Origin: Polymyxa betae A26-41
Taxonomy: Eukaryota > Protista > Endomyxa: Phytomyxea
Reading direction: 5' to 3'
Assembly (NCBI GenBank): GCA_003693705.1
Contig: RBZT01000181.1
Span: 1-50,007 of the forward strand
Length of the DNA: 50,007 nt
A program made the translations under genes and the position numbers. Each line of letters starts with the position of its first letter. Position 1 is the stretch's first letter. The notes beneath the pieces are model-generated. The model was not told where the DNA came from. It was given only the letters and a program-made list of their open reading frames with translations, and made no database searches. Shown one piece after another: positions 3,086-45,379 of the stretch.

Positions 3086-6000
3086 ATGGTCGTCTACAAC
3101 TTCCGCTCGCTCAAGGTCGTACCGACCGCCCCGCAGCTCCTCGACATCGTCCTGTCGCGGACCCAGCGCAAGACCGCCACCGAGGTCCATAAGCGCTTCA
3201 GCATCCAGCGAATCCGTCAGTTCTACATGATGAAGGTACAGAACGAGGCCGCACCGAGGGAGAGGCCCCGCCCCAGCCTTCATATCGCTCTGTTTCATCG
3301 CTTTGCACGCTGTTTGAAATCGTTTTGCTTTGCCGCTTGATTTCCTAACCCTCTTTTGAAACGTTGATCGTAACGTTGGATGTAGCGTAACCATCTGTGA
3401 ACGTTACTGCTTTCTTATGCTTCTGCTGGGATTTTTATTACAGTCTTTAATCATTTCAGAAGCTTCCAATAATCGTTGAGACCTATTATATTCTGATGGC
3501 AAAGCTATCCTATCGTCTGTCGTAACGTAAAAATCTGCTCACGTTACGTCCGAGATTGCGAAAACTTTCTTCTTTTAAGTCGTTTTCTGTCCAGTTTCCA
3601 TTGTTCATTCAGATTTTCTTTCAAAAGTTTTGAACTCAATTTTTTCTAATTCATTTCAAGTAACATCAACATGCAGGTGAAATTCACGCAATCCACGTTT
3701 CACGAGCGTCTGTCCGAGATCGTCGACGAGTTCCCGCGTCTGGATACGATCCACCCGTTCTACGCCGATCTGATCAACGTCCTGTACGACCGCGACCACT
3801 ACAAACTGGCTCTGGGCCAGCTGAACCAGGCCCGTACGTTGATTGATAACGTCGCCAAGGACTATGTTCGTTTGCTGAAGGTAACGTGGCTGGCTGCGTG
3901 TGTGTGCTCGAGTCGGTTTGTGATACGGTTGCGTTACAGTTCGGGGATTCGCTGTATCGCTGCAAGCTGTTAAAACGCGCGGCGCTTGGACGCATGGCCA
4001 CTATTGTGAAGAAATTGAAGTCGTCGTTGGGCTATCTGGAACAGGTAACATAAGAATACCTCGTTACATTTCGCGCTTCTTATTCTATTCGTCAATTTTC
4101 AATTCCCTCCGTTTTGTTTCTCTCAAAGTCTTGTTCTTTTTCCAGTTTCTACCGGTTTTTGCATTCACTTTTTTTCTGTTTTGAATCTGCTCTCGTTTTT
4201 CAACTCTTCAAATTCTTTCTTAAATACAAATTTGTGAACTTTTTCTCGAGATTCTTTGATATCTGTCAAGTTGCCATTTTCGACCTTTTTCAGTTTTTTG
4301 CGTTTCTTTTCCATTGCTTTCGAAGAGCTCAACTTTTTGTCAGAGTTTATTTTTCACTTTGTGTTGGACAATTTCGGTTTCTCGCAAATTGCCGTTTTTT
4401 TTACAACTGCTTCGTATAGGTCCGCCAGCATCTGTCGCGTCTTCCATCGATTGATCCATCAGCCCGTACCCTGCTCCTGACCGGTTATCCGAACGCCGGC
4501 AAGTCGTCGTTCATCAACCAGATCACCCGGGCCGACGTCGACGTCCAGCCGTACGCGTTCACGACGAAATCGCTGTTCGTCGGCCATACGGACTACAAGT
4601 ATCTGCGCTGGCAGGTTATCGATACGCCCGGAATTCTCGGTACGGCCATGTTTACGTCACGACTGCGTTGACGTTACTTGGTTTCGTTACTTTGGCAGGT
4701 TTCGCCATTTTAACAGTTTCTGTCTCTACTGCTGCGTTTGGGGTTTACGTTTACGCTACCACTGCGTTTACGTTACCCGATTTCGGCACTCTGTCTGGTT
4801 TCGCTACTTTAAACATTTCAGTTGCCACTGCTGTGTTTTGGGTTTACGATACTAGTTCGTGGTGCTGATTACGTTACACAGATCATCCTCTTGAAGACCG
4901 TAACACCATCGAGATGCAGTCGATCACAGCCCTGGCCCATCTGAACTGCGCCATCTTGTTCATGATCGATATCTCCGGAGCCGGACAATACTCGATCAAG
5001 CAGCAGGTAACATTACACGACATTCTTCTCAACCTGCTTTTCCAATTCGATTTTTTTCTGTAAATTTTCACTATTGCTTTCTCTCGCACTTTTTTTCACG
5101 TTTCGCTCTAGCTTTGAAGGGTTTTCTTTCAATTTTTAAAATTGCTTTTTAATGCTGTCCAAATTTTCTGCCCTTTGCAAACACTGCTCTAAGTTTTCCA
5201 TCTCGAAACTTTTCACTTTTTTTACTGATTTTTTTCCAACTTTTTTATTTCCACATTTTTTATTCACTCTTCAGATTTCGCTGTTCAACTCGATCAAGCC
5301 CTTATTCGCCAACAAGCCGCTCGTTCTGGTTGCCAACAAGACCGACTTGCGTCCGTTGGACGCTCTCGATGACGAGGACCGCGAGCTTCTGCGCTCGGCA
5401 TCCAACGACGGCAAGATCCCGATCATCCCAATGAGCAATATCGCCCAGGAAGGCATTCAGCAAGTGAAACAGACCGCCTGCGATCTCATCCTTGATCATC
5501 GCCTCTCCGTTAAGCTTCGATCGAACAAACTCGATACTGTTCGTCATCGCATTCAGATCGTTCAACCCGCGCCTCGTGATAACAAGGTCTGTTCATTCAC
5601 ATTCGCCAAATATTTTCAACATTTTCTTCGGTTTTGCAAAAAATTGTGTTCAATTGATCAAACAGTGGACACCGGATGAACAATCTTCATTTATTCCATC
5701 TTTTTACATTGTTTTTTTTTCTCGCTTTTTCATTCATTTTCCGTTCTGATTTCTCTTTCTTTTTTGGGCAATTTCGCTTTTGCTTTCTTACAATCTTTCG
5801 TGTTTATTCATAATTCACGATCTTTACTCTTCAATTAATGTTCGTGTTAGGTTCGGGCAGTTTGTATTCCGGAGTCGGTGATGAAGGCGCGCGCCCTGAA
5901 GGCCGACGGCATGGCGCCGCCGCCCCGCAAGACCGCCCGCCAGATCGAGGCCGAGAACGGCGGCGCCGGCATCTTCAATTTCGATATGCGCGCCCATTGG

Positions 6001-7338: not shown

Positions 7339-9441
7339 CTAGGCGAATGCTGTCACGGAGCATTCCGGTGTGGCGAGAGCCTGCATCCGTCCCGGATCGA
7401 TGTAGAGTCCGTCGATCAGCCCGTCGTCCCCGTGAATCGGCAGAGGCCAGAGCCAGATCACGGACCCCAGCACCTGGGTCGTGTTGGCCCACGCCCCGCG
7501 GTTGAATTTGACATTGGCGATGGCGGAACGCCGGCGCACTTCCTGGTCCCGCGACTGATGTTTCTCTCGGAATTCGATGGTCGTCATATTTTGCATGATA
7601 ATCTGCCAGGCGCAGCCCACCCCGTCAGTAAACTCATTATCAACACAGACAGACCCAGTAACATGAACCAAGCTGAAACAGAAAGCAGTTACGTCAAGGG
7701 TGCTCTGCCTTAACCGTAACAAAAACCAGTAACGTAAAAGGGGTAACGAAAACTGGTAACGTAAACCCCAGATAGGCATCAGACCACTAAATATGCGCTA
7801 TCCAGAGAAAGCTAGGTAGCAAAAGTATGGTAGCGTAAACTGGTAACGTAAATGTGGTAAAGCCCAATTTGTAACGTAACAATGCGGGACATTACATAGA
7901 TGTGGAAGGAAAGAAAGAGAATGAGACCGGCCGCCAGAGAGATGGCTACGACGCAGACCAGTACGACGACAACGTCGGTGTGGGCCAGTTCGCCATCGAC
8001 GATATTGCGGACTGCAGCCCAGACGCGACCGGACATCACGGTCAGGTAGGCGAGTAACGTGGCCGTCGCATAGAACAGGAACAGGACGAAGAATTTGCGA
8101 TTGCGCAGTCCGATGGTCGTGTGCGCGAACGTGCAGTAGTGATCCATGACCAGGACGCACCTGTTGCTCGTCAACATCATGCGGTTCAAAAAAAAACCAG
8201 TAACGTAAGCATTGGTAACATCAACCCGTAACGTGAATGCGGTAACATGAACCGCCATGTGATGAACAGCACGACACAAACATCAATTGGAGTTGAAAAA
8301 TGAATTTTGAGTATAGAGCCCGGTAACGATAGCAACCAGCATGTGGTAACATAACCGATGGAAACATAGATGTTGGTAACAGCAGTATCGCTCCAAAAAT
8401 AGAAACGAAGCGAAAACAAATAGCTAGGGTTTAGGGTTTCCAAGTCACTGCAAACGCGATCTCTCGTACGTATCGGTCCGGGAGCAGTGATGTGTGCGAT
8501 CGGGTTTGTAATGGGCCGGTACGCACTTGGTGCACTTCCGTATCGAGCCAGTACGGCGGACTTTGAGCTCGGCGAACGGCAGCTGGCGGACCCGTTGCCG
8601 CAACGGCTCGGTGAGCGGGTAGAAGCCCGGCTCGGCGATTTTCTGCATGAGTTCGATCTCGGCGGGAGTCAAGGCGAACCGCGCCGCCTCGTCGTCGTTA
8701 TCGTCGTAACAGGTCCAGATCTGTCAATATGTTAGACAGCCAAATTTTTTCACAAGACAAACCCTAACCCTAACATCGGAAACATTTCGAGTTCTTTCGA
8801 AAGTGTAAAAGGGTTTTAATTCAGCAAAAAACTGTCACATTTGTTCTCAGAATGGATTAAAATTTGACACTTTCGAAAACATTCTTCAAAAGTTCGCAAA
8901 AGGAAACGAAATGGAGCGAGTTCATGATTTCAAGAGAGCGTTGAGCTGATTGTGTGACTTACATGATCTGGTGGTACTGATCCAGGGGCGGTTAGTATCA
9001 GACGAATATATGAGATCCACATTAATATGTAGGATATATGGAAGATCACCTATCAGAGAGAGATATATATTAGGGTTAGGGTTCTCATTATCACAATAAA
9101 CATTCGATGCACACAGAGAGAGGGATCAGACCCCATCGCCCCAAACCCTAACAGAAAAATCCTTTCAAAACAGAAGACTGAATTCAGATTTCACGCAGAT
9201 CAAATCCAACGGCGGAAACTTTCAACGAAATCTGTTCATGCAGCCGTACGAAGGCGCGGGGTGGTACCGGCCCACCCGTGCTCCAGGCGAGGACCTGATC
9301 GAGGCCCGCGACCGCCAGATAGACGCCGTAGGCCACGGCGTTGAACACGACGAAGGCGACGGCGGGCGCGTACGACCGCCTCGGCACGGGGTCGGACATG
9401 GGCTTGCGCGGCAGACGCCCAGCAGCAGCGTCCGTCAGCAT
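7339..9441 (-). CDS. DHHC-family palmitoyltransferase (DHYC variant), 5 exons, ~352 aa
   Basis: Exons 9441-9250, 9049-8963, 8720-8470, 8160-7896, 7602-7339, phase-consistent. Motifs: TAPGSVP, CTKC..KPDRTHHCS..CVLVMDHYC..IGLRNRKFF, NMTTIE (TTxE), and FNRGAWANTTQVLG (PaCCT-like). Four hydrophobic segments. Confidence 0.92.
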
Positions 9442-11466
9442 GCGAACGGCATGCCGACCTAAGAGGACGGTCGGCGATCGGTCGCTGATCGTTGATAAGG
9501 GGGGCGGGTACGCCGCGATCAATGCGATCTCGGGCTATCCGTTTCAGTAGGCGTCAGGCGTCACCACACCTGACAGACCGTGCTGGCCCCCTCCCCCGCT
9601 ATGACTGTCTGCCCACTGACTAGACTCTGTCCCAGTCGTGGACCCTGGTCAGGACTGTAACGTAGCATGGGACGCTGCGTCCGGCTGCGGTAACGCGACT
9701 TGCTGGAGGCAGGTTCATGCTTGCAGCGGTATCGCGTGCGATAGTTTGATCGGGCTCGAATCCCTGATTCGGAGGCAGGGGTTAGGGTTTTTTTGTGGGC
9801 GGCCTCTCTATTCCGCTCTACCGTACGCCTCTCGGTATAGGGTTTGAGGGACCTGGAGCGAGTCCAACAATGCACTAGGGTTTTGTGGTCGTGCTGATCC
9901 ACTCGAACACAACAACTCGACGAGTCTCTCTCTTGACACATTTGGCCGAGTTTAACGCAGCTGATGATTGTGTGCCACTTTCCTTCATCCCGACCAACTC
10001 TGTGAGATGTCCTATAGAGAATACTCGAGAATTTTGAATTTGGAGAAGATCAGATCGAAATGTGTGCAGGCTGTTAGGTCGAGATTCGGCCTTTGCTTTT
10101 ACCGAGAAGCTGTGTCCTGTGTTTCCAAACGTCTCATATCTGATCATCGTTATGGATATCGCTCTATGTACTTCAGGTTTCATCTTCTCTCCGACAGTCG
10201 CTGTACTCGAGATTGCCATAATATCGGTATTAATGAGAGTATCTGATTGTTCACGCTTCGAGAGTTACGCTGCTTGTTCGCCGGCTGTTCATACAGGCTG
10301 AGTTTAGAGCCGACAATCTCCATTATGGTCTCATCTCTATATTCTGGTTTGTCTGCGGCCAAACGACCGATCATTGAGCCAAGCCTATTCGATACTTTCG
10401 CTTTTGCACTCTCAGCATCTTTGGCGTTGTTTATGCAGAGGTTTCAGTCGGTTCAATATCCGTCAGGATCTTAGAGGCTCTCTACCTGCGCAACGATTCC
10501 AGTTCAAGTTGATTCGAACGTCGCAACTGACAATTCGAATCTTGTTTCTAGAGATGGCCCTTTTATTTTCAAACGCCGACTTCATAGGGTTTGAAAATAT
10601 TGAAAATGTTGAAAAAAATAACAGAAAATGTGGTACCTATTAATAAGAACCACCACATCATAAAATCAAATATGAAATACAAATATTGTACCACAGAGGA
10701 ACAATGTTTCAATTCTTTCTGTGAAATCTGAAACATCTACCTCAACACTGTCATAACTTTTTCTAACATAACAGAGACTTGTCTAAGCCGAAGGACGGTT
10801 TGCTTATATAAATTACATCGTAATGGATTGCGTCTTTCAACTTTCAATTATTTCTTTACACTAAGTTCAGATTGTTCAGCTTTAGAATTTATATCTAATT
10901 ATTAAGTCCAGAAATGTATGGACTCTTTAATTTCGGGACTTCAAATGGGCTGTACACCATCAACGGAGTCCCATCGATGATAGAACGTTGAGAAGCTGAA
11001 CTGTATGGGTTGGGCTGGAACCTGTAGGTGGCTGCGCCCGTCCAACTCCATCTAGATGATGTTAACGGCGTGTTTTGGCTTTTGCCAGACTCAAAGAAGA
11101 CAATTTGGAATCGATTGAGCATTGGATCGATCGATGGTCAGGCCGATGTTTTCAGCAAAACCGGATAAGGAGAGAAGTGATGAAGGGAGGTCATGCTTGC
11201 CGTTCCGGCAGCTCATGAGAGGACAAGCAATCCCAAAGCGGCGCCGAAATCTCTACAGCCCCGGCATAGAAATTCCCAGCTCGACCGAAGTTGACTAAAT
11301 CATAACATCGAGATGGAAAAGTCTTTATTGACTGCAGACCATTCGATGGCAACAGTCATATATTCTAGGAGGTTCTTGAACCCTTATATACAGACAGCGC
11401 CAAGCTGATCCGATTTCGAGTCGAGGACCAGCTTGAAGCGGAGTTACGATTCAGCATCTGATTACG

Positions 11467-13472
11467 TTACTGAATTAAACAGTTTCCTGACTTTAAACGC
11501 AGTGAAGATCGTTGGCGATCAGCAAGACGGTCAGATGTTTGTTCCATTACATCCTCCGTATCCGAATTCAAAATCGACTCTTCTGACACCGCTTCGGCTC
11601 CTACTAACAGCGATTTAGCGATGCCGAACATTCAGTCAACATTATTGATTAATCTTCTTTCGACAAAAACGAAACAAAAAATGAAAATTTTGGACAAAAC
11701 CGAAATTCAACAGGTTTAACAGGACACAAATTCTCATTGACAGAAACTTATAACTCGAAATACCTTCGTGAAATTTTGGTGCAGACGCAAGTAGAGAATA
11801 TCGAACGGTTTCACAATCAGCAGGAGGCTGCCTTCGGATCGGATACTGTCTCCTGGTAGATGAGCCGCCAGCTGCATCGGAGATTGTAGCAGCAAGGTCC
11901 ACAGCATCATCAGGAGATAAATGACTGTCGAACTCGTGGCCAGCGGTGCTTGATACATCTTCACCTATATAGTATGAATTGATTGAAGATATCAAAAAAC
12001 AAATGAAAAGTAACAATACAAATGTAGAGATTCGGAATATATGAAGCAGTTTGACTAAAACGACAAAAAGAATCATACCTCCTTGAATGATTGGCAGCAA
12101 TGGACTGCCTGGCTCTTTGACAGCGGTCGCCGATACATTTACCACTATACAGCAAGATCAAAAGGCGCAAGGAATAACAACATAATAACAGAGTACAAAA
12201 CGTTGATTTTAACCAAAGCGCATTCTCTCCGAATGAAAATGACTCGTACCTTCAACCAAGGTCGACGACGGACTGCAGGATTGTTGGCCAGCGGTACTCG
12301 ACTCATTACCAACTATATACAGCAGGATTTGTGAGGATTGCAGCGAGATATACCACGCAAGACAAAAAAGAAAAAAAATAGATCATTTGGAAATACGAAC
12401 GAAACTGTCAAAAAACAATCGGACCTTCGGGTATCAAAGCGGACGAAGGACGGTCGGATTCTTGAGTTGCGGCCCCCGATAGTTCCACTACAGAGCACAG
12501 TTAGCAAACAGGTGCCAAAAACACAGAAAAACAATTACAAAAAAGGAATGGACCAAGTAAAAAAACACGATACCTTCTTTTAACAAGGTTGATGAAGGAG
12601 TGTGATTCTCTTGACCAGGAATCTCCGATACATGTCCTATAGACAATAATCAGCACAGTAAAATTAGCACGAAAAATCAATGCGAAAGAAACACAGCTCT
12701 GGAAGAAAAAAAATGTGAAGCTGAGCAGAAATTTCCGACCTTGTATTAAAGAGACGACAGAATGGCTGTTAGATTCTTGACCAGCGGTCCCCGATAGTTG
12801 TACTAAGCATGATTAGAGACAAATGCAGAGTAGAAAGCCAACTTCTAAACAGAGAAAACACAAAAACAAAAAAACCACCAGAACAACAAATAAAATCATC
12901 AGACCTTCTTCTATTAAAGAGAGGACCGAAGGTGATTCTGTGCGCAGCCGCTTCATGCAAGGTTCGAAGGTGGGCGTCAATTCCGAGACCGTGACGGCTG
13001 GCGGTGATATGACGTCTTGGCAATCGAAAATGGCAGCGTAGGGCTCTCCGGAGGCCTCGCCTGACGTGCCAAACAGCTCCGTGCCGATATCCCTGGTCCG
13101 TCGATAGTAGATCATGACGGTTTGATTCGTATACGGACGGCGGTCGCCGAATCGCGCGGACATCGAGCTGGCGACCGTCCGCCAGTCGTTACGGTGAACG
13201 GCGACCAGGTCGCTCAGGTAACGATTTTCTTCCGCGGTCCAGAGATTGCGGCCACGTTTCCTTTTGACAGCGGCCCTGGGAGAGGCGGCGCGAACCGGCG
13301 GCTGGCGGTCGTGTTGGTCCATCAAGTCCGAGAGCGATTGCGGACCGGCGAATGGTATGGTTGGGGCGGCCCGCGACCCCTCGAACGTCTGATTATGGCC
13401 TTGGACGATACTCTCGGCGATCTGTACGGCATCGTCCCTGAGCTGGACGTGATCGTTCGTGTTGCTGTTCAT
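11467..13472 (-). CDS. Single Myb/SANT-domain protein with a C-terminal array of duplicated symmetric small exons (~406 aa)
   Basis: Exon 13472-12905 encodes RGRNLWTAEENRYLSDLVAVHRNDWRTVASSM (Myb W..EE...W). It is followed by phase-1 exons 12802-12740, 12636-12574, 12487-12425, 12312-12250, 12144-12079, 11964-11764 and 11600-11467, all flanked by AG/GT. The start codon and last exon are less certain. Confidence 0.75.
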
Positions 13473-13919
13473 GTTACAGGAGGGCGTGGTAACAGAGGCG
13501 TCCAGGCAGGGGATGCTTTGAAGAATATCGACCTGCGAGAACGAGAGGTGAGAGAATGGAGGAGTGCGATGGAAACGCCGGAAATACCGCCACGGCATTG
13601 ACGGCAACAATCAACAAAACCAAAACACCAACTCCGTGTTATCGAATGTGAACAAAACAATCGAAAACGAATTCTGGCGACGTTCAAACACACAATCCAA
13701 ACTTGCTGTCAAATATGCTGTAAAAAATAAGACAGGAGCTATAAACAGAACCCAAAACATAAGGCGCGATCGCCCAAAAACTATCATGATACGATGTTAA
13801 AATCAGAACAATTCCCGCTGAAAAATAGAAATAAGGAAAATTTAGATTGAAAAAATATCACAATTGTATGGAAACAAAAGGACGCAGGAATACTAAAAGA
13901 ACAAATCGAAACCCTAACC

Positions 13920-14363
13920 CTAAATGGAACTCAAAGCTAAATATACAATATCTGTCTGAGACGAGGCAGGGGGCTGCGTCGAGCTATGAACAGCCTCGCC
14001 TTTCTTGTCATCGTCGTCTTCACCCATTTCTCTCGATAGATTGACGGCGATATTCGCCAGCGACTCCAGCGGCTGTAGCGGGAGTCGCTCGTCGTCCATC
14101 CAGAGACCAGAGCGCCCCGGGGGTCTCTGTGAACCGGCGCCCAGCAGCGACTCCAGCGCTGTCGTGCCTAGCTCGGCCTCCGGCTTCACGCGACAAAGTT
14201 GCCGATAACGCAGATCGAGACGCAGCTGCCGGTACGGGCGCAGCTGGCCGAATCGGCGCTCCATGCCGCGGCCGATCTGTACCCAGCGCCGGCTGGCGCC
14301 ATAGCGGCCGACGAGCTCGTCCAGATAGGCGATCTCGGCCAACGACCAATTCGGGTAGCGCAT
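13920..14363 (-). CDS. Small single Myb-like protein, paralog of the neighbouring gene
   Basis: MRYPNWSLAEIAYLDELVGRYGASRRWVQIGRGMERRFGQLRPY aligns with the neighbouring Myb repeat (W..EE..YL..LV....W..V...M..RFG..RPY). The 3' end may be spliced. Confidence 0.7.
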   Translation of the reverse strand: MRYPNWSLAEIAYLDELVGRYGASRRWVQIGRGMERRFGQLRPYRQLRLDLRYRQLCRVKPEAELGTTALESLLGAGSQRPPGRSGLWMDDERLPLQPLESLANIAVNLSREMGEDDDDKKGEAVHSSTQPPASSQTDIVYLALSSI

Positions 14364-14377
14364 GAAGAGTGATGTAT

Positions 14378-14395
14378 GAGAGAGAGAGAGAGAGA
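14378..14395. repeat. (GA)n microsatellite just 5' of the Myb-like ATG
   Basis: Run gagagagagagagagaga. Confidence 0.85.
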
Positions 14396-15009
14396 ATGAG
14401 TGGGACCTGCGCCTCTGCTAAACCTAACACGTTACGGGAAGGTGCGGCCTCTCCGGGGGGAGTCCAGCTAAGCGTCGTCCGTCACAGCGCACTTTTTTTT
14501 GGGAGGATCGCTTCTTATGGTCGAGCTCCTGTATGAGAATGTTGGTAGTGAGGTTTTACTCGGTGCCAGGCGCTGGAAACTTTCAAACAACTCCGCGCTA
14601 TTTTTTGGGATTGTTTTAGGGATTGTAGGTCAGCAGTTGAAAAATGTCATTGACAAACAGAACAGAAAAGGCGAGTCAGAACACAAAAGTTGATATAATT
14701 GATTGTTTTTCCTACAATATTTAATGGTTCATATCAGTTACGAAGGTTTTTGGGGTTTATGGTCAACCATATCGGAGACTTGGTCTGTTTATCACTCAGA
14801 ACTGGTATATATTTCAATTGTAAAAACTTTATGTAGCTGTTGTGGCGGCCGCTGTCTTTAGGCTGATTCAACAGGTGCCATGGAAACCTTTGCCTTTGTA
14901 ACTTCTGTTAAAAAACCATCCTGTTTTCCTGCAGTGCAAAGTCAGAAGAAAAATTGCATTTGAGAATTCAGCTCAAGAATCTCATGATAGTGTTATCAGA
15001 TTCTCTTTG

Positions 15010-28824: not shown

Positions 28825-31800
28825 TTATACATTGAACTGAATCGGGGCCTTATTCTGTCCGCCGACCTCTTGTTGAAATCTCAGCAGAGCCTGGCGATGT
28901 TCCGCTTGCAGACGACGTCGGTACCAGAATACAGCCGCCACCAAGATGGTCACCACAGCAACAGCGATGGCGGCCGTCACGGCCACGATTTCTTCAATCT
29001 GCCACGAGGTATCCAGCATCGATTGACGGAACCCGACTGTGTTGGAGACGGCTACGCTCAGGTCCCCGGTACGACACGCGTCGAACAGGCACATCTGCAG
29101 CGAAGAGCTGCGTTGCGCCAGCTCATCCATCGTCATACCAGATGGATTCAGTAATGACATTTCGCAGCTGCCTGAGTAACAGAAACGTCAACGTTTTTTT
29201 GTAATTTCAAACGGTTTACTAACAATCTGAAAAAATATTAAAGCGGTAAAAAACTAAAAACTTCAACGTTTTTTTGAAATTTTCAAACAGTTTAAAACCT
29301 GAAACAAAAATATCAAAAAGTTTTAGAATAACTTCAACGTTCTTTCGGTCGTTTTCAAACAGTTTACGAACCTGAAAAGTATATCTAAAAGTTGTAAAAA
29401 AATATGTTAGGGTTTGCGTTTATCTTTTTGTAATTTTCAATAAGTTTACAAAAATCCTTAAAAAATAGGTATCTGAAATATTGTGAAAAATTCACTGTAT
29501 AAAAATTGAAAACTTTACCGAGTGCGTCGAAAAACATGTCGATCGTATCGCAAGAGACAACGGGTTGGGGCGGGACGTCGTCCTCATCGGCGTCGGCCAA
29601 GGCCTGAAACCCGCTCCACGTCTCGGAGTCCGGATCGCCGACCCGAGCGCCACCCGGTGCGAAATACATACAGGTCTGGTTGGTGACCAGGTTCTGGGCC
29701 AGCATGGCCAGCAGGTCGTCATCGGCCTGCGCCAGTTGCTCTCCGCACATCGTCGTGCGGACCAGCGAGGGCCAGGACGGCAGCGTGTAGAATTCGCTCC
29801 AGTCCAGTTGGCGGCATCGGCGGTAATAGGTCGGCCGACGGCGTCCGCGGTCCGAATATTGGTTCCCGGCACGGTGCCCGTATTTGGTGCGGCCTTCCGG
29901 GTCGATATGCCCGCACAGACCCCAAGTCCGTCCATAGAGAGGCGACAACCCCGTCGAGTACTCGCCGACTGCTTGGCCACGGTCTTCGGCGCAGCTCGAA
30001 TCGATCGTGACCCGGAACGCGAACCACCCGTATTCCAGTACGGCCCCGGAGCACCCGAACTCTTTGTCCTGACACACGTTAAGTTACCGACTTGATGTAA
30101 CGAATATGTCACACAAAAATCAGCGGAAATGTAAAAACCAGAAATCTGGCCACAGAATGGGAAAAAAGTGAAAAAATGACGCAACAATTTACAAAATGAA
30201 CAAAAGAATCACAAAAACCTTTCAATTCTGGCAGAAAATGTCGCAACTTTTTGAAGAATATAACAAAAAGTTTGCTGCACGATACCATGGTAATTCGGAC
30301 ACCAGAGGTCGCTTTCCGCAGCCAGACGGGTCTCGTCGGGCTGCCGATGTTCACGTCCGCCGTCATGGACATCGATAGGGTCACGGATTTCTGCGTGGCC
30401 CAGTCCCATCGCCAGACTGTACAGCCGGCACCGCCGCACTTGATATCGTACACGAACACGTGGTCGGGCAGGACCGTAGCTCCGTAGTCCGCGCCACCGT
30501 TGCCCGTACACGCATAAGTAGCATCGCAGTGGTCCAGTCGATCGGCGTACTGGACCACGACGGGGTCAGTGGCCGGCCCGATGGTAACGAGGGAGTTTAC
30601 GTTACCGCATCGCTGAATACGATCAGTTTGGATTCGAAATCGCAGGAGACCGCAGACGGCTGCATGTACGAGACCGGGTCAGCACGACCATTGCAGGTGT
30701 AGGAGCGGCGGTCGCTGCGCCGGGTCGGGTCGCATTCTTTCTGGAGCGAGATGGCCGCGAACCGACGGTTGGCCACGGTGAGATGGTATCCGGCGCCCAT
30801 ATGATGATAATTGCAGCCTTCGAACGTGCTGATATGAGGATCACCGGCCTACAGCGCAGTCAGAGAAAACCTAACCCTAATACAGCTTGCCCGCAGCCAG
30901 ATGAAACATCATTGAAACAAATCAAGGGCAGAATGCACTAAAGCAAACCCACTAAAATTTTCTTCTTGCAAGCATAGCCAGCAAAATAAAAAATCCGAAA
31001 ACCAACGACAGATTTTTTAACCACGGAAACGGGTTCCAATCGAAAGGATCAAAAATGTAACATAAACGTGACGGTACCATGTTACAGGTATGAATGAGAT
31101 CCTTTTTCGTACAGTAATGATATCCGATGGGGCCAGATGCGTTCTGCTGAGTATCGTAGCATTGGGATCCGTATGGCAGCAATGGCGGGCATTTTGGTCC
31201 TGAAGGAGCTGGCGTCGGACTGGCTGTGGTGGGTGGTAACGCCCGCACAATCACCTAAACCAACCAGTAACGTTAACTCTGATGAAGCTCGATGAAGAAA
31301 ACGGCATTTGTTGCGTTTCGCCAAACGTCAGTAAGCAGGTCGACCGAAATTTGTAACAGAATATGATGAAATGTAACATAGTATGAAGGGAAGAAATAGC
31401 GAGAAGACCGTACCGGAGTTGGAGCTGGAGTCGGAGCGGGTGGAGGTGCAGGAGTGAATTTGGGGCCTTGGGGCGGTGTTGGGGCTGGGAGTGTCGAAGT
31501 CGGTGCTGGAGTTGGTGCATAGCGCTGAGGAACGGGTGCTGTTGTGATTGGGGCCGGGGTGGGGCCTTGGGGCGGTGTTGGGGCTGGGGGCGGAACCCTG
31601 GTTGGAGTCGGTGCTGGAGTTGGCGCATAGCGCTGAGGAACGGGAGCGGGAGTTGGTGTTGAGGTGGTTGGGGCCGGGGTGGGGTCTTGGGGTGGCTCTG
31701 GGGTGAACGGTGTTGCCGGAGGTTGTCCATAACGCTCAGGGGCTGGAGTCGGCGTATCAAGTATAGCTGTAGTTGTTGGGGCTGTCGATGGTGTCGGAGA

Positions 31801-33518: not shown

Positions 33519-34197
33519 GAGCCCAGTCCAGTATGACCGAATTCCCACTACGATTCCGCACTGTGTATAATTATACAGGAGAATGTCCGAGTCGATGTTT
33601 GTGGTTGGTCCCGTGTAGGGTTTAGGGTTAGGGTTTGAGACAATCCAATTGTAGCGTAGTCCGTCTCCATCTCTTCCATCACTCAACACATACGTCTGTG
33701 GCCTGCAGGGGACATCAGACTTAGAGCAAACCCTAAAGGAGGGATGTGCGCGGCCTCTTGCTTCAGGGAATCCCTCTCTGTATCAGTCAACGACTGGTGT
33801 CGGTGCGGCTCTGAACGATTCCGTCAGCTCCTGATTCTGTCGCAGATCTAAAATACACAGAATCTGTGATAGAAAAAGAATAGAGCGAATGAGCATCACG
33901 GCAATGAGGCCGCCACAATTTTTGTCGGCTGAGTCGTTCTCTCGACATGATGGTTCTCCCTGCTCGGTTTTCGAACACTCACGGAGATACCTAGAGGCAA
34001 TAGACGTTAAGCAGTATTAAAGTGCGTTTTTCTTTTAAAATGTTCAAAGATCGACAATCAAACAGAAATCTACTTCGAAAGATGCAAAAAAATCATTCAT
34101 CGATAATGACAATGATGATTATGATGCATCACAATTACAGCTGTAATAATTACAGAGCAAAATATGACAGTGTAATGCATTAGCACGGACAAGGACG

Positions 34198-41043: not shown

Positions 41044-44033
41044 ATGTCGGTCGGGTCGGTCGTACTGGCCCTCGTCGTCGTCCTGGTGGTGGTTCGAGCG
41101 TCGCTCGCATCAGCAGCTCTGACAGAAGAGGCCGCCGTCGCTAAGATCGCCTCTCTTCATCAGAAACAGTCCCATATTGGCCGCTTCGATGAGGATCTGC
41201 GCGATCTCATCAAATATTACTCTCCGAAATCATCCTTCTTATCATTATCGTACAATCACTCATCGCTGGCATTGATTCGTCAATATGACCGTCACCTGAT
41301 CGAAAATCTGCTCACATCCGAGAATCTGCACGAAGTCCAGTTCGGAGCCCTTCTACTATCAGTCTATCCTCCAACATCATCCGATCTTGTTATAAATCTA
41401 TTGCAGGCTGCGAAACGGCTCAATAATTTCATTCCGAACTATCACCTAATTATATCCCGCATGAAATCTTCACACCGAATTCAGCTGGCCATCACGATCT
41501 GCGATCTTTTTCTCTCCGATGACGACGTCGTCATGGAATCGAATTTCCGAAGAGGAACGTCGATTCGGACTTGCTGGGACAACTCAATTCAGGATCTGTC
41601 TCGCTCATCAATTCGTGACCTCTCTCTGCGCCTTTCCCGGAAACTGTCTCCCTTCTGGTGGACCGAACTATTCGAACCTCTGATTCGCGGCCTCTTGATC
41701 AACTATGAGATCGCTTCCGATCATGTCTCGGAATCTGCGAATTCTCGCATTCGTGATCGTTCGCGCAAGGAGTTTCGCGGCGCTTTACACAAAACCTGTG
41801 ATAAGAACGAATATTCGGACGAAGCCGCGATTCGATGCTGCATGATATCCGAAAAGACGACGGATTCCGTGCTAACGGATCTGATGGAAAACCGCGCTAA
41901 CAATGCTCACTTCGTGTAATGTTTCCGCCGCTGTCTTGTGAAAACCCTAAACCCTGTAGTCAAATAGGAGCGCTCTTCCGAACCGATATTCATGAGCTGA
42001 TGAAGGACCATAGGCTGACGGGTCCAACGGGTCGGCTCAAAGCCAACACGAAGACAACGAGTTTATTGCCGCGGTTACTCCGACATATTCCGAACGATTT
42101 CTGGCTGTTTAAGAGATTATCGCTTCATACATTGTAAGCTGCGGCGAAATCGTCCTGATAGGGTTTCTAAGATGGCTGCTGCCAGGGCTGCTCAGGATCC
42201 ACAGCTTTTCAGCGATTGTTGGTCGAAATGGGACAAACTCTTGCATCAGCCATGGTCGAAATTTCAAGGGATTTTTTCTCCATTTTTGCACAAAATCGAG
42301 ATTTCTTTATTTTATTTTCGATCGTTTTTTACGTCTTTGACAATTGTTGTGTCAGGTCTGTTAATGGGACGAAAGTCTCTTATCGTCATTATGCCGTGTG
42401 GATGAACATTGGCGAATCCCATCAATTTCTAATGAACAAGCCCTCAGTCCGATATTCCGAGTTTTTTACGGCTTTTGCGAGTGCCAAGGAGCAAATCGCT
42501 GCGGATTTTCTCGACATTGTACACGTTCTCAGCAGACAGTGGGTTTTTCCTCAAAATTTCATTCTTTTTTGTGAACGGAACCTCCAAAATTCTGAAACGA
42601 CATTTTTCTTTTAATTTTCATTCTTCTGTGAACGGAACTTTGCAGAAATCTGAAACTTTTTTTTTTAATTTTATTCTTTTTTGTGAACGGAACCTGCAGA
42701 AATCTGAAACGACCTTCAGGCTGGATCCGTCTCGTTATGGTTGGTCTCATTATTGTGAGCAACGCTCTCATGCAGAAGCCGCTTCCCATCTGCTGAAAAT
42801 CTCTCATGTCCCGGATCATTTCCATCGTAATCTTCTGGATGTAGTTTTGGGCGCGCTTTCTGCCATGAACGAGTCCGATCTCGCGGAAGTCTGTTCCGGT
42901 ATCCTGAAGCATCCGCTATTAGAGAATTCGCAGTTTACAATCGACCAGTTATCTGCTGCTGCAGCCAGAATCCATCACGCAGACGATCTCATCATAATTT
43001 CCTCTTTAGCGTCAAATCTTCCAGAATTTGCCGCCCCGTTTCACGGCATAATTTCCGCACGATTCAGCTGGGGTTTCTGTAACCGGATGTCGCATAGCTC
43101 GCGGCTCGCACTCGTGCCGCAATTCCCGCAACATACCCTCTGTCAGTTACGTTACCCTCACCACTGTTTCCGTTACCATTGACCGCCTGTTAGTCCTCGA
43201 CCCGGTTCGCCATTTTCTCCGTCCCGGACAACAACCCTCGATTCCCGAGCCGATCCGCCATAATCCGGATTTTTTCCAATCGCTGCTTTCCTATCCGGAG
43301 ATAGATCAAGATCTCATCTTCCCATGGATGACCGGTCTCCTGACAAGTCCGTACTGGACCAGCACGGCCGATGATTGCCGGATTGTACTCGAAGTGGTTG
43401 GCGTGTCACGGATCGATTCCGAGACGTGTCGGGAGCTGCTATCTGTAATGTTACAGGATGCGAATCGGACTCCGGATCGTCGTCGTGATCGTTGGTGGAA
43501 TCTGTGCGTCCCCTTCATACAATCGTGGTTCCGGGATCCATCCGCTCACGATTTCATGATGATTTCGACCAAGTTCCCGCAGTACAATCTCGGTATCCGT
43601 GATACATAGACCATGAGAAGTCTATTAATGATGCGATTTAGTTATTGATCCGAAGCGGATCTTTCGCCTGCCTGGATTCGATTCGTTCATTGAAGAACAC
43701 CTTCAATATCGCTGCTTTTTCGATTTGTTAATAACAGCGCTGCCTTCTTTGAAGCCCGAACAGCTCCTTCCAACCGCTATCTGCATGATGCAATCTCCCT
43801 TCTGGGATCATTCTAACGACGATCTATTCCAATCGATTTTCACAGCGGCATCATCGTCGTACGACCTCACGGGTTTATTAACAGCCGTCTTACAAAACCC
43901 GGACGCCGTTTCTTGCAAACGAAACCCTAACCCTCTGCGCCCTGTTCTCCTTCGCTTATTTGATCAATTATCCGGAGATCAACAGAATGCCGTCTGTGAC
44001 TCCTGCCCCGATTCTGCAAACTGTAAACCCTAA
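41044..44033 (+). CDS. Large secreted helical-repeat protein, multi-exon (exon 1 ~41044-41915; later exons ~42172-42254, 42356-42538, 42720-43141, 43194-43591, 43642-~44030)
   Basis: Strong signal peptide MSVGSVVLALVVVLVVVRASLASA. Downstream exons are mostly phase-compatible with GT-AG introns. The junctions around 41915-42170 and the 3' end are unresolved. Confidence 0.6.
42555..42712. repeat. Intronic tandem repeat, ~56-bp unit x3
   Basis: attctt..tgtgaacggaac....gaaatctgaaac repeated three times. Confidence 0.8.
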
Positions 44034-45379
44034 CCCTAACACATTCATTTCTCTCTTAATATCAAATAGATCTGCTGGCCAGAGCGAGACCGTTCAAGAT
44101 CACGCAAGATAATCTGGAATCGGTAACTTTTTTGTTTTTATTTTTCGAAAAAATTTCTCCTGCTTTTTATCTTCGAATGCTTTTTTTTCATTGAGAATTG
44201 TGCAGGTGCGGGATTTCGTCACTGTTAGATGTGCAATATGCCTTGATGGAATGCGCGATCAGAATGGCAATCCGGTCGAAGGCCTCGATAATGTATTGGA
44301 TCTTTACAAAGAAAAAGTCCGCTGAGTTCGTGTTTAGGAGAAACATGAAATCTGCTCGCTGCATGTCTGTCCGCATTTCCTGCATCTCGATTGTGTCAAA
44401 GGGTACATGGCCGCATGCCGTGGCGCTTTCCGCTGCCCTCTCTGTCGACTCGATGTCCAACTACTTTCCGAATGATTGTAATAAAAACATGCTCGCTTCT
44501 CCCTCACATTTGTATGATGAATGCTGCTTTCTAAAACCATCTCCAACAACCTGGATACTTTCTGTTTCATATTGACAGCGTTGTTTAGCCCGTTCCGAAA
44601 ACAGGGATATTTTTGGACGGCAAAACCCATTTTGTTTTTTTCGAGAGCGTAGTGAACTTTAACTCATAGAATCGAAAATCCATGGCCGGCGCTTTCAAAC
44701 GCTCTCACTGCGCTCCGATCTGTCGTCATTACCGCTGAATACGTGACAAATCATGGAGATGGCAACGGCTATCGCACGAACGGTAACCGAGCGAGTATCA
44801 CGTTCATATGCAGAAGAGAATTCCTTCCTGCTTAAGAGCAAAGAGAGTCTGAAGGACCAGAAGAAGGCGCGCAGGCATTCGCGCTGTCAGCAAGAACGAT
44901 CAATACGACAGACTTGTCCGCGACTCCCCTCACAAGACCCAGTTTAACATACGCCTATCGGGCGTTTGCGAAGTCAAGCGTCGCATCTGGGATACGAAAA
45001 CACGCTGGAACCAGGTCTACCTGTGTAACGAAACAGTATTGGAAGATTACCATCACGTTACGTTGAACGCCGCATCACGCCCCCTGTTAATGTTCTAGAA
45101 TGAATACTCATCACCATAAGCATAATATCTAGTTTCAGATAAGCCACACAAATTGACGAATTCGAAAACCATTTCGAAAATTTTACGACCCTGGTAGTAG
45201 AACAGTGTAGAATAGAAACCACATAGTTGTCATATACTGATATCTGATAAGCACAAACTTGAACAGGAAACATGCAGTATAACTCGAACAGAACAGTACA
45301 AATTACAGAAAATCCTTCAAATAACAATTGTGCAACGAAAATGTGGAAAAACAATCGTTCGGATGAAAGGGAAGCGAGA

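Follow-up and report, generated by a model that had tools for sequence, protein, structure and literature searches.

A common and documented way for genes to grow is to duplicate, in tandem, symmetric exons for disordered protein segments; it has been described genome-wide in human (PMC3632108), with AMBN and the SIBLING genes as examples. Members of this class carry adjacent homologous exons of one symmetric phase class, multiplied together with their introns, and encode a disordered, Ser-rich, motif-bearing repeat. Runs of short exons, each a multiple of three in length and omissible in frame, also characterize the micro-exon genes (MEGs) of schistosomes, which consist almost wholly of exons of 6-81 bp (mostly 15 bp), typically 10-20 of them, with introns of 0.1-5 kb; their products are secreted and bear a signal peptide, and isoforms are known to vary (10.1101/2023.06.21.545858). 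Animal clusters of mutually exclusive or cassette exons are likewise made of tandem, equal-sized, same-phase duplicates, and one exon or a subset of them enters each mRNA. Here we describe an array of duplicated mini exons in the rhizarian protist Polymyxa betae, a plasmodiophorid that parasitizes roots as an obligate biotroph and whose draft genome (1,001 contigs, 27,085,946 bp, GC 45.1%) was deposited unannotated (PMC6328671). The array lies within the window, the whole stretch of 50,007 nt that was analyzed, to which all coordinates refer unless another contig is named. We consider it probable that the locus is one expressed, two-repeat Myb-like gene whose disordered tail was built in part by old tandem exon duplication, and that this tail, with every unit present in the dominant mRNA, serves as a constitutive repeat of a linear motif.

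Six public sequencing runs from two studies match the locus, each containing 0.49 of the words sampled from 11400-13700, which is approximately the exonic fraction of that interval. Contigs of four of the six runs, again from two studies, were aligned to window positions 10800-14700. Every run yielded one long contig (1573-1850 nt) with 0 mismatches to the genomic exons, and each contig skipped the same eight intervals: 11604-11763 (160 nt), 11965-12078 (114 nt), 12145-12249 (105 nt), 12313-12424 (112 nt), 12488-12573 (86 nt), 12637-12739 (103 nt), 12803-12904 (102 nt) and 13533-13946 (414 nt). All eight are canonical, reading CT..AC on the plus strand and hence GT..AG on the minus strand. The contigs end at 11303-11325, positions given as 5-25 nt past the AATAAA signal at 11324-11329. 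The records of the four runs carry no RNA label (their kind is entered as '?'), and we infer that the contigs represent cDNA because eight GT-AG introns are exactly removed, the open reading frame is preserved and the ends lie past AATAAA.

Translation of the spliced contigs gives a minus-strand gene of nine coding exons with an ORF of 1701 nt (566 codons plus the stop), in which the exons other than the mini exons measure 417, 628, 201 and 137 nt. Coding exon 1 (13947-14363, minus strand; contigs of four runs) comprises 139 codons from the ATG at 14363, encodes the first, divergent Myb-like repeat and ends in phase 0. It is followed by intron 1 (13533-13946), and in four of four runs position 13947 is joined in frame to 13532 (the alignment places the joint at 13530/13945, with the cut shifted by +2). 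Coding exon 2 (12905-13532, minus strand; 628 nt) ends in phase 1 and encodes the second Myb-like repeat (about 13077-13241), a KRKRGR stretch and, at its C-terminal end, half of an array unit. The ORFs at 14363-13947 and 13532-12905 thus belong to a single transcript, as its exons 1 and 2, and are not separate tandem paralogs. Consequently, the gene extent proposed in the initial annotation stands for the array part and has to be revised at the upstream end, since the transcript continues via the 414-nt intron into the ORF at 14363-13947. Termination at the stop at 12813, which would have removed the array from the mRNA, is not what the contigs show; they run on through all the predicted junctions. 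Downstream of the array, the last intron (11604-11763, minus strand; GT..AG, phase 1; contigs) precedes the last coding exon (11467-11603, minus strand), which ends in KSGNCLIQ and a TAA stop at 11469-11467, with the CaaX-like codons at 11470-11481 (contigs and translation); the 3' UTR (11303-11466, minus strand) is bounded by the contig ends. A (CT)n simple repeat occupies 14367-14406 on the minus strand, directly upstream of the start codon and within the probable 5' UTR. An Rfam search of 10500-15000 returned no match.

The surrounding sequence also contains a telomere-like 15-mer, TTAGGGTTAGGGTTT, which occurs 8 times in 50 kb when up to 2 mismatches are allowed (0.06 copies expected), at 8759-8773, 9070-9084, 13909-13923, 29407-29421, 30866-30880, 33622-33636, 43922-43936 and 44025-44039. 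The copy at 13909-13923, found by motif search, lies about 20 nt into intron 1 of the Myb-like gene, and a similar sequence, GGGTCTAGGGTCTAGGGTTT, is found near one of the two paralogs described below, that on contig C687. It may be a dispersed, telo-box-like cis element.

The array itself consists of five mini exons and the beginning of a longer exon, all on the minus strand and all of phase 1-1. In the order of transcription, these are m1 (12740-12802, 63 nt), encoding (V)QLSGTAGQESNSHSVVSLIQ; m2 (12574-12636, 63 nt), encoding (G)HVSEIPGQENHTPSSTLLKE; m3 (12425-12487, 63 nt), encoding (V)ELSGAATQESDRPSSALIPE, whose nearest relative is m1; m4 (12250-12312, 63 nt), encoding (V)GNESSTAGQQSCSPSSTLVE; and m5 (12079-12144, 66 nt), encoding (V)VNVSATAVKEPGSPLLPIIQG. 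They are followed by the 201-nt exon (11764-11964), which opens with 14 codons, GEDVSSTAGHEFDS, that match the front half of a unit and is otherwise unique. Contigs, translation and alignment support m1, m3, m4 and m5; m2 is supported by translation and by its presence in every contig as 62-63 letters between the aligned flanking pieces. A T-rich stretch with AG at its end lies before each of the five mini exons, and a GT donor comes after it. The six inter-unit introns (86-114 nt) span 11965-12904 and are T-rich (43-55% T, GC 0.26-0.37). The initial annotation had predicted these exons from the letters of the sequence, and its description of the array is confirmed: the coordinates of the five mini exons and the 201-nt exon proved exact to the base, with all junctions present in the contigs of four runs; translation bears out the lengths, the common phase and, with the split codon carried over, the unit peptides; the 201-nt exon does open with a unit, although this is a half-unit; the units are related to each other; and the array belongs to a Myb-like gene.

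The same annotation had argued that any subset of these exons could be skipped in frame to give up to 2^6 isoforms. The mini exons and the 201-nt exon each end in G, so the junction codons are all GTN or GGN (Val or Gly), and skipping is possible in principle without creating a stop. The contigs of four runs from two studies all carry every unit, however, and no skipped form was seen, so the predicted diversity does not find support. Likewise, no second contig or alternative joint through the array was found among the contigs of the four runs, from which rare forms drop out. The dominant mRNA carries all five mini exons and the 201-nt exon in series.

This arrangement sets the locus apart from two of the systems introduced above. 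Although it shares with MEGs a run of short, in-frame exons, only 318 of its 1701 coding nucleotides (19%) belong to exons no longer than 81 nt, its inter-unit introns (86-114 nt) fall at or below the bottom of the 0.1-5 kb range, and its N-terminus, MRYPNWSLAEIAYLDELVGRYG, opens Myb-like repeat 1 and, by inspection, has no hydrophobic leader. The resemblance to micro-exon genes proposed in the initial annotation therefore fails on micro-exon share, intron length and signal peptide, and kinship with them is without support. Unlike in the mutually exclusive and cassette clusters of animals, all the copies are used in series, so that they add length to the protein instead of replacing each other; the locus falls outside that class. 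It fits the class of tandem exon duplications, as its copies are homologous, of equal phase and transcribed. It differs from the human examples (PMC3632108) in belonging to a rhizarian protist and to an apparently lineage-restricted Myb-like gene, in its introns of about 100 nt, in being of class 1-1, and in the age of its copies, whose introns no longer align.

The homology of the units is supported by pairwise alignment, in which exon copies are 65-78% identical with z 3.4-15.6 against shuffled sequences; m1 and m3 are the closest pair (47 of 60 nt, z 15.6). Profiles built from half of the units (three) recovered the held-out units as the best other matches in a six-frame search of the window (iE 0.003-0.02), and a profile of all seven units found no match outside the array gene in the 27-Mb genome. 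Two of the seven are partial. The last 13 codons of exon 2, RTESPSVLSLIEE (12906-12944), match only the second half of the unit, and the head of the 201-nt exon matches only its first half. The first residues of the last exon (VGAEAVSEES...) resembled a unit by eye but, not being significant (z < 2.5), were dropped. In most units, a Ser at position 4, T-A-G-Q-E, S-P-S-S and L-[IV]-x-E recur, and the consensus is approximately V-x-[LV]-S-x-T-A-G-Q-E-S-x-S-P-S-S-x-L-[IV]-x-E.

The introns between the units gave a different picture. The six show z < 2.6 against shuffled sequences and no alignment beyond their splice-site ends; the only parts that recur are the first 10-13 bases (GTCNGA..TTTT) and about 7 at the other end (..TATAG), captured as repeat families D2 and D7 in a repeat search of the window. 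Families D1, D2, D4, D7 and D8 are spaced at 166-180. Tandem Repeats Finder reported no array with a period of 166-180 bp and just short A-rich runs in introns, which fits introns diverged beyond recognition. That the exons remain alike while the introns retain no similarity beyond splice signals suggests that the duplications are old and the exons constrained. Identity by codon position is 0.52/0.65/0.43, second positions being the most conserved, and comparisons among m1-m5 and the 201-nt exon head gave dN 0.34-0.70 and dS 0.5-2.4. The resulting dN/dS is only about 0.5 and noisy, as each pair offers 16-20 codons, and the unit peptides are 30-55% identical. Together, these values point to exon copies kept under weak purifying selection.

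What does the rest of the gene encode? The searches and structure predictions were run exon by exon. The two repeats resemble each other (BLASTP E 1e-6), and repeat 1, which has no Pfam or other database match of its own, is recognizable only via repeat 2. Repeat 2 matches Pfam Myb_DNA-bind_6 at E 1.6e-4 with 22.3 bits, below the cut-off of 22.9, and a second Pfam Myb model with 21.1 bits (cut-off 24.4), a cut-off that the C687 paralog exceeds with 25.7 bits. When a two-sequence profile of exon 2 and this paralog was searched against the PDB, c-Myb and B-Myb were found (E 1.9e-4), the matches lying on repeat 2. AlphaFold predicts for exon 2 a three-helix bundle at residues 100-152 (helices 100-113, 117-128 and 136-152; pLDDT about 90), whose top Foldseek neighbours, all at E > 0.1, are the CDC5L Myb domain, c-Myb R1 (TM 0.74 by target), the SMRT SANT domain and the TRF2 Myb domain. 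The gene thus shares with Myb/SANT-like helix-turn-helix proteins (PF00249, PF13921) the W-x(18-19)-W spacing of helices 1-2, the predicted three-helix bundle and the presence of two repeats, but differs from them in that an RFGxxRPY insertion replaces the canonical turn between helices 2 and 3 in both repeats. In the same model of exon 2, residues 150-209 receive pLDDT of about 40; the first half-unit lies in this segment and is the sole part of the array that was modelled. The mini-exon peptides contain 27% S+T, 11 D/E against 3 K/R and zero aromatic residues, a composition typical of disorder. These predictions are best explained by a gene product with two divergent Myb/SANT-like repeats and, behind them, a tail that is disordered, acidic and rich in Ser/Thr.

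The same genome contains two more members of the family, on contigs C687 (L017, about 3530-5700, minus strand) and C870 (L003, 518-2103, plus strand). Each has three coding exons and shares with the array gene both Myb-like repeats, the RFGxRRxYTN stretch in repeat 2 and the KRxR stretch. In the two paralogs, a single phase-1 intron follows GAA G|GT, and neither contains mini exons. In the last exons of the paralogs, BLAST detects no similarity outside the final eight residues, and all three proteins end in K-S-x-x-C-[LV]-[IV]-Q (window 11470-11493, minus strand; L017 3536-3559, minus strand; L003 2077-2100, plus strand). A CaaX box in which X is Gln is a farnesyltransferase signal, and prenylation is rare among DNA-binding proteins. 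Judged from these CaaX-like ends, the three Myb-like paralogs may be prenylated.

An exhaustive HMMER search of 1.84 billion representative proteins with exon 2 as query gave 0 matches below 1e-30, and thus no ortholog; to judge from 11 matched sequences, the best matches (1e-11) belong to generic multi-repeat Myb proteins. Because the genome deposit is unannotated, even the array gene has no entry in the protein libraries. A scan of metagenome contigs found no relative. Since no relative closer than generic Myb repeats appeared among the 1.84 billion representatives, the two-repeat Myb-like family with CaaX-like ends is apparently lineage-restricted.

How could the array have arisen? As both paralogs lack it, the simplest history is an expansion in the array gene around one ancestral phase-1 intron, and the array is most simply read as derived in this gene, by parsimony over three paralogs and with no outgroup. 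Our model suggests that the duplicated segment comprised the end of one exon, the intron and the start of the next exon, such that each new internal exon would be composed of a first half and a second half. Repeated tandem duplication of a segment of about 165-180 bp, corresponding to a 63-nt phase-1-1 exon and its intron, would then leave five complete units of 21 residues between two half-units, one closing exon 2 and the other opening the 201-nt exon. Half-units at both flanks are the footprint expected of duplication across a single ancestral phase-1 intron. The exact breakpoints are unrecoverable, as the introns have diverged beyond alignment.

Regarding function, we hypothesize that the array presents a short linear motif in constitutive, repeated form and raises its valency, which is the usual interpretation of tandemly duplicated symmetric exons encoding disorder (PMC3632108). 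The motif would combine a patch rich in Ser, in many cases containing S-P, with a small hydrophobic-acidic element behind it, L-[IV]-x-E. The units could be sites of phosphorylation or of partner binding within a regulatory or activation segment, and this multivalent segment would sit between the putative DNA-binding part and the conserved CaaX-like C-terminus. If the repeat is constitutive, the number of copies would matter and not the choice among them.

The main rival to a motif repeat is a neutral spacer, in which unequal crossing-over lengthened a low-complexity region and the extra length was tolerated without any motif-specific function. The dN/dS of only about 0.5, the low identity of the unit peptides, the predicted disorder of the segment and the existence of two paralogs that manage without the array would all suit such filler. 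Yet the exons are still 65-78% identical when the introns duplicated with them have no detectable similarity, their second codon positions are the most conserved, and the same four motif elements, from the Ser at position 4 to L-[IV]-x-E, recur in most units; we therefore regard neutral filler as doubtful. Far less plausible is that the array is an artefact, either a mis-assembled or collapsed repeat or a set of intron-less contigs derived from DNA, such as a retrocopy. The runs do lack an RNA label, and the draft was assembled from short reads and binned out of a root sample (PMC6328671), but units that differ at 22-35% of nucleotides could not be collapsed or confused by an assembler, a search of the genome itself shows no intron-less second copy, and contigs of two independent studies agree with it at 0 mismatches, with eight canonical introns gone and ends past AATAAA. 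We give this explanation almost no credence.

Combinatorial skipping of cassette exons, with up to 2^6 isoforms of the tail as in schistosome micro-exon genes, appears unlikely. The symmetry of the six exons would permit it, every subset of these phase 1-1, multiple-of-three exons being readable in frame without a stop, and symmetric disorder-encoding exons are enriched among human alternative exons (PMC3632108). Against this stand the single all-inclusive contig per run, with no other joints in four runs from two studies (minor forms may be hidden), the 86-114-nt introns, given that outside animals intron retention prevails and exon skipping is uncommon (PMC6142364), and the features of micro-exon genes that the locus lacks. 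Also improbable, and to much the same degree, is that the array is a module of tunable length, in which skipping in a minority of transcripts at particular life stages (zoospore, plasmodium, resting spore) would give a graded set of prenylated Myb-like regulators, or in which the number of units would vary among Polymyxa isolates. If true, regulated in-frame skipping in an array of duplicated exons would be out of the ordinary for a rhizarian protist with short introns.

For this locus, which lay in an unannotated P. betae draft, there is now a transcript-verified nine-exon model. The array that it contains represents ordinary exon duplication and calls for no new mechanism, and combinatorial isoforms are so far unsupported. 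Read as a derived expansion, the gene offers a clean protist example in which one phase-1 intron seeded an exon-duplication array, while its paralogs kept the unexpanded state. Together, the three genes define a small family of Myb-like proteins with two repeats, apparently restricted to this lineage, all of which end in a CaaX-like box.
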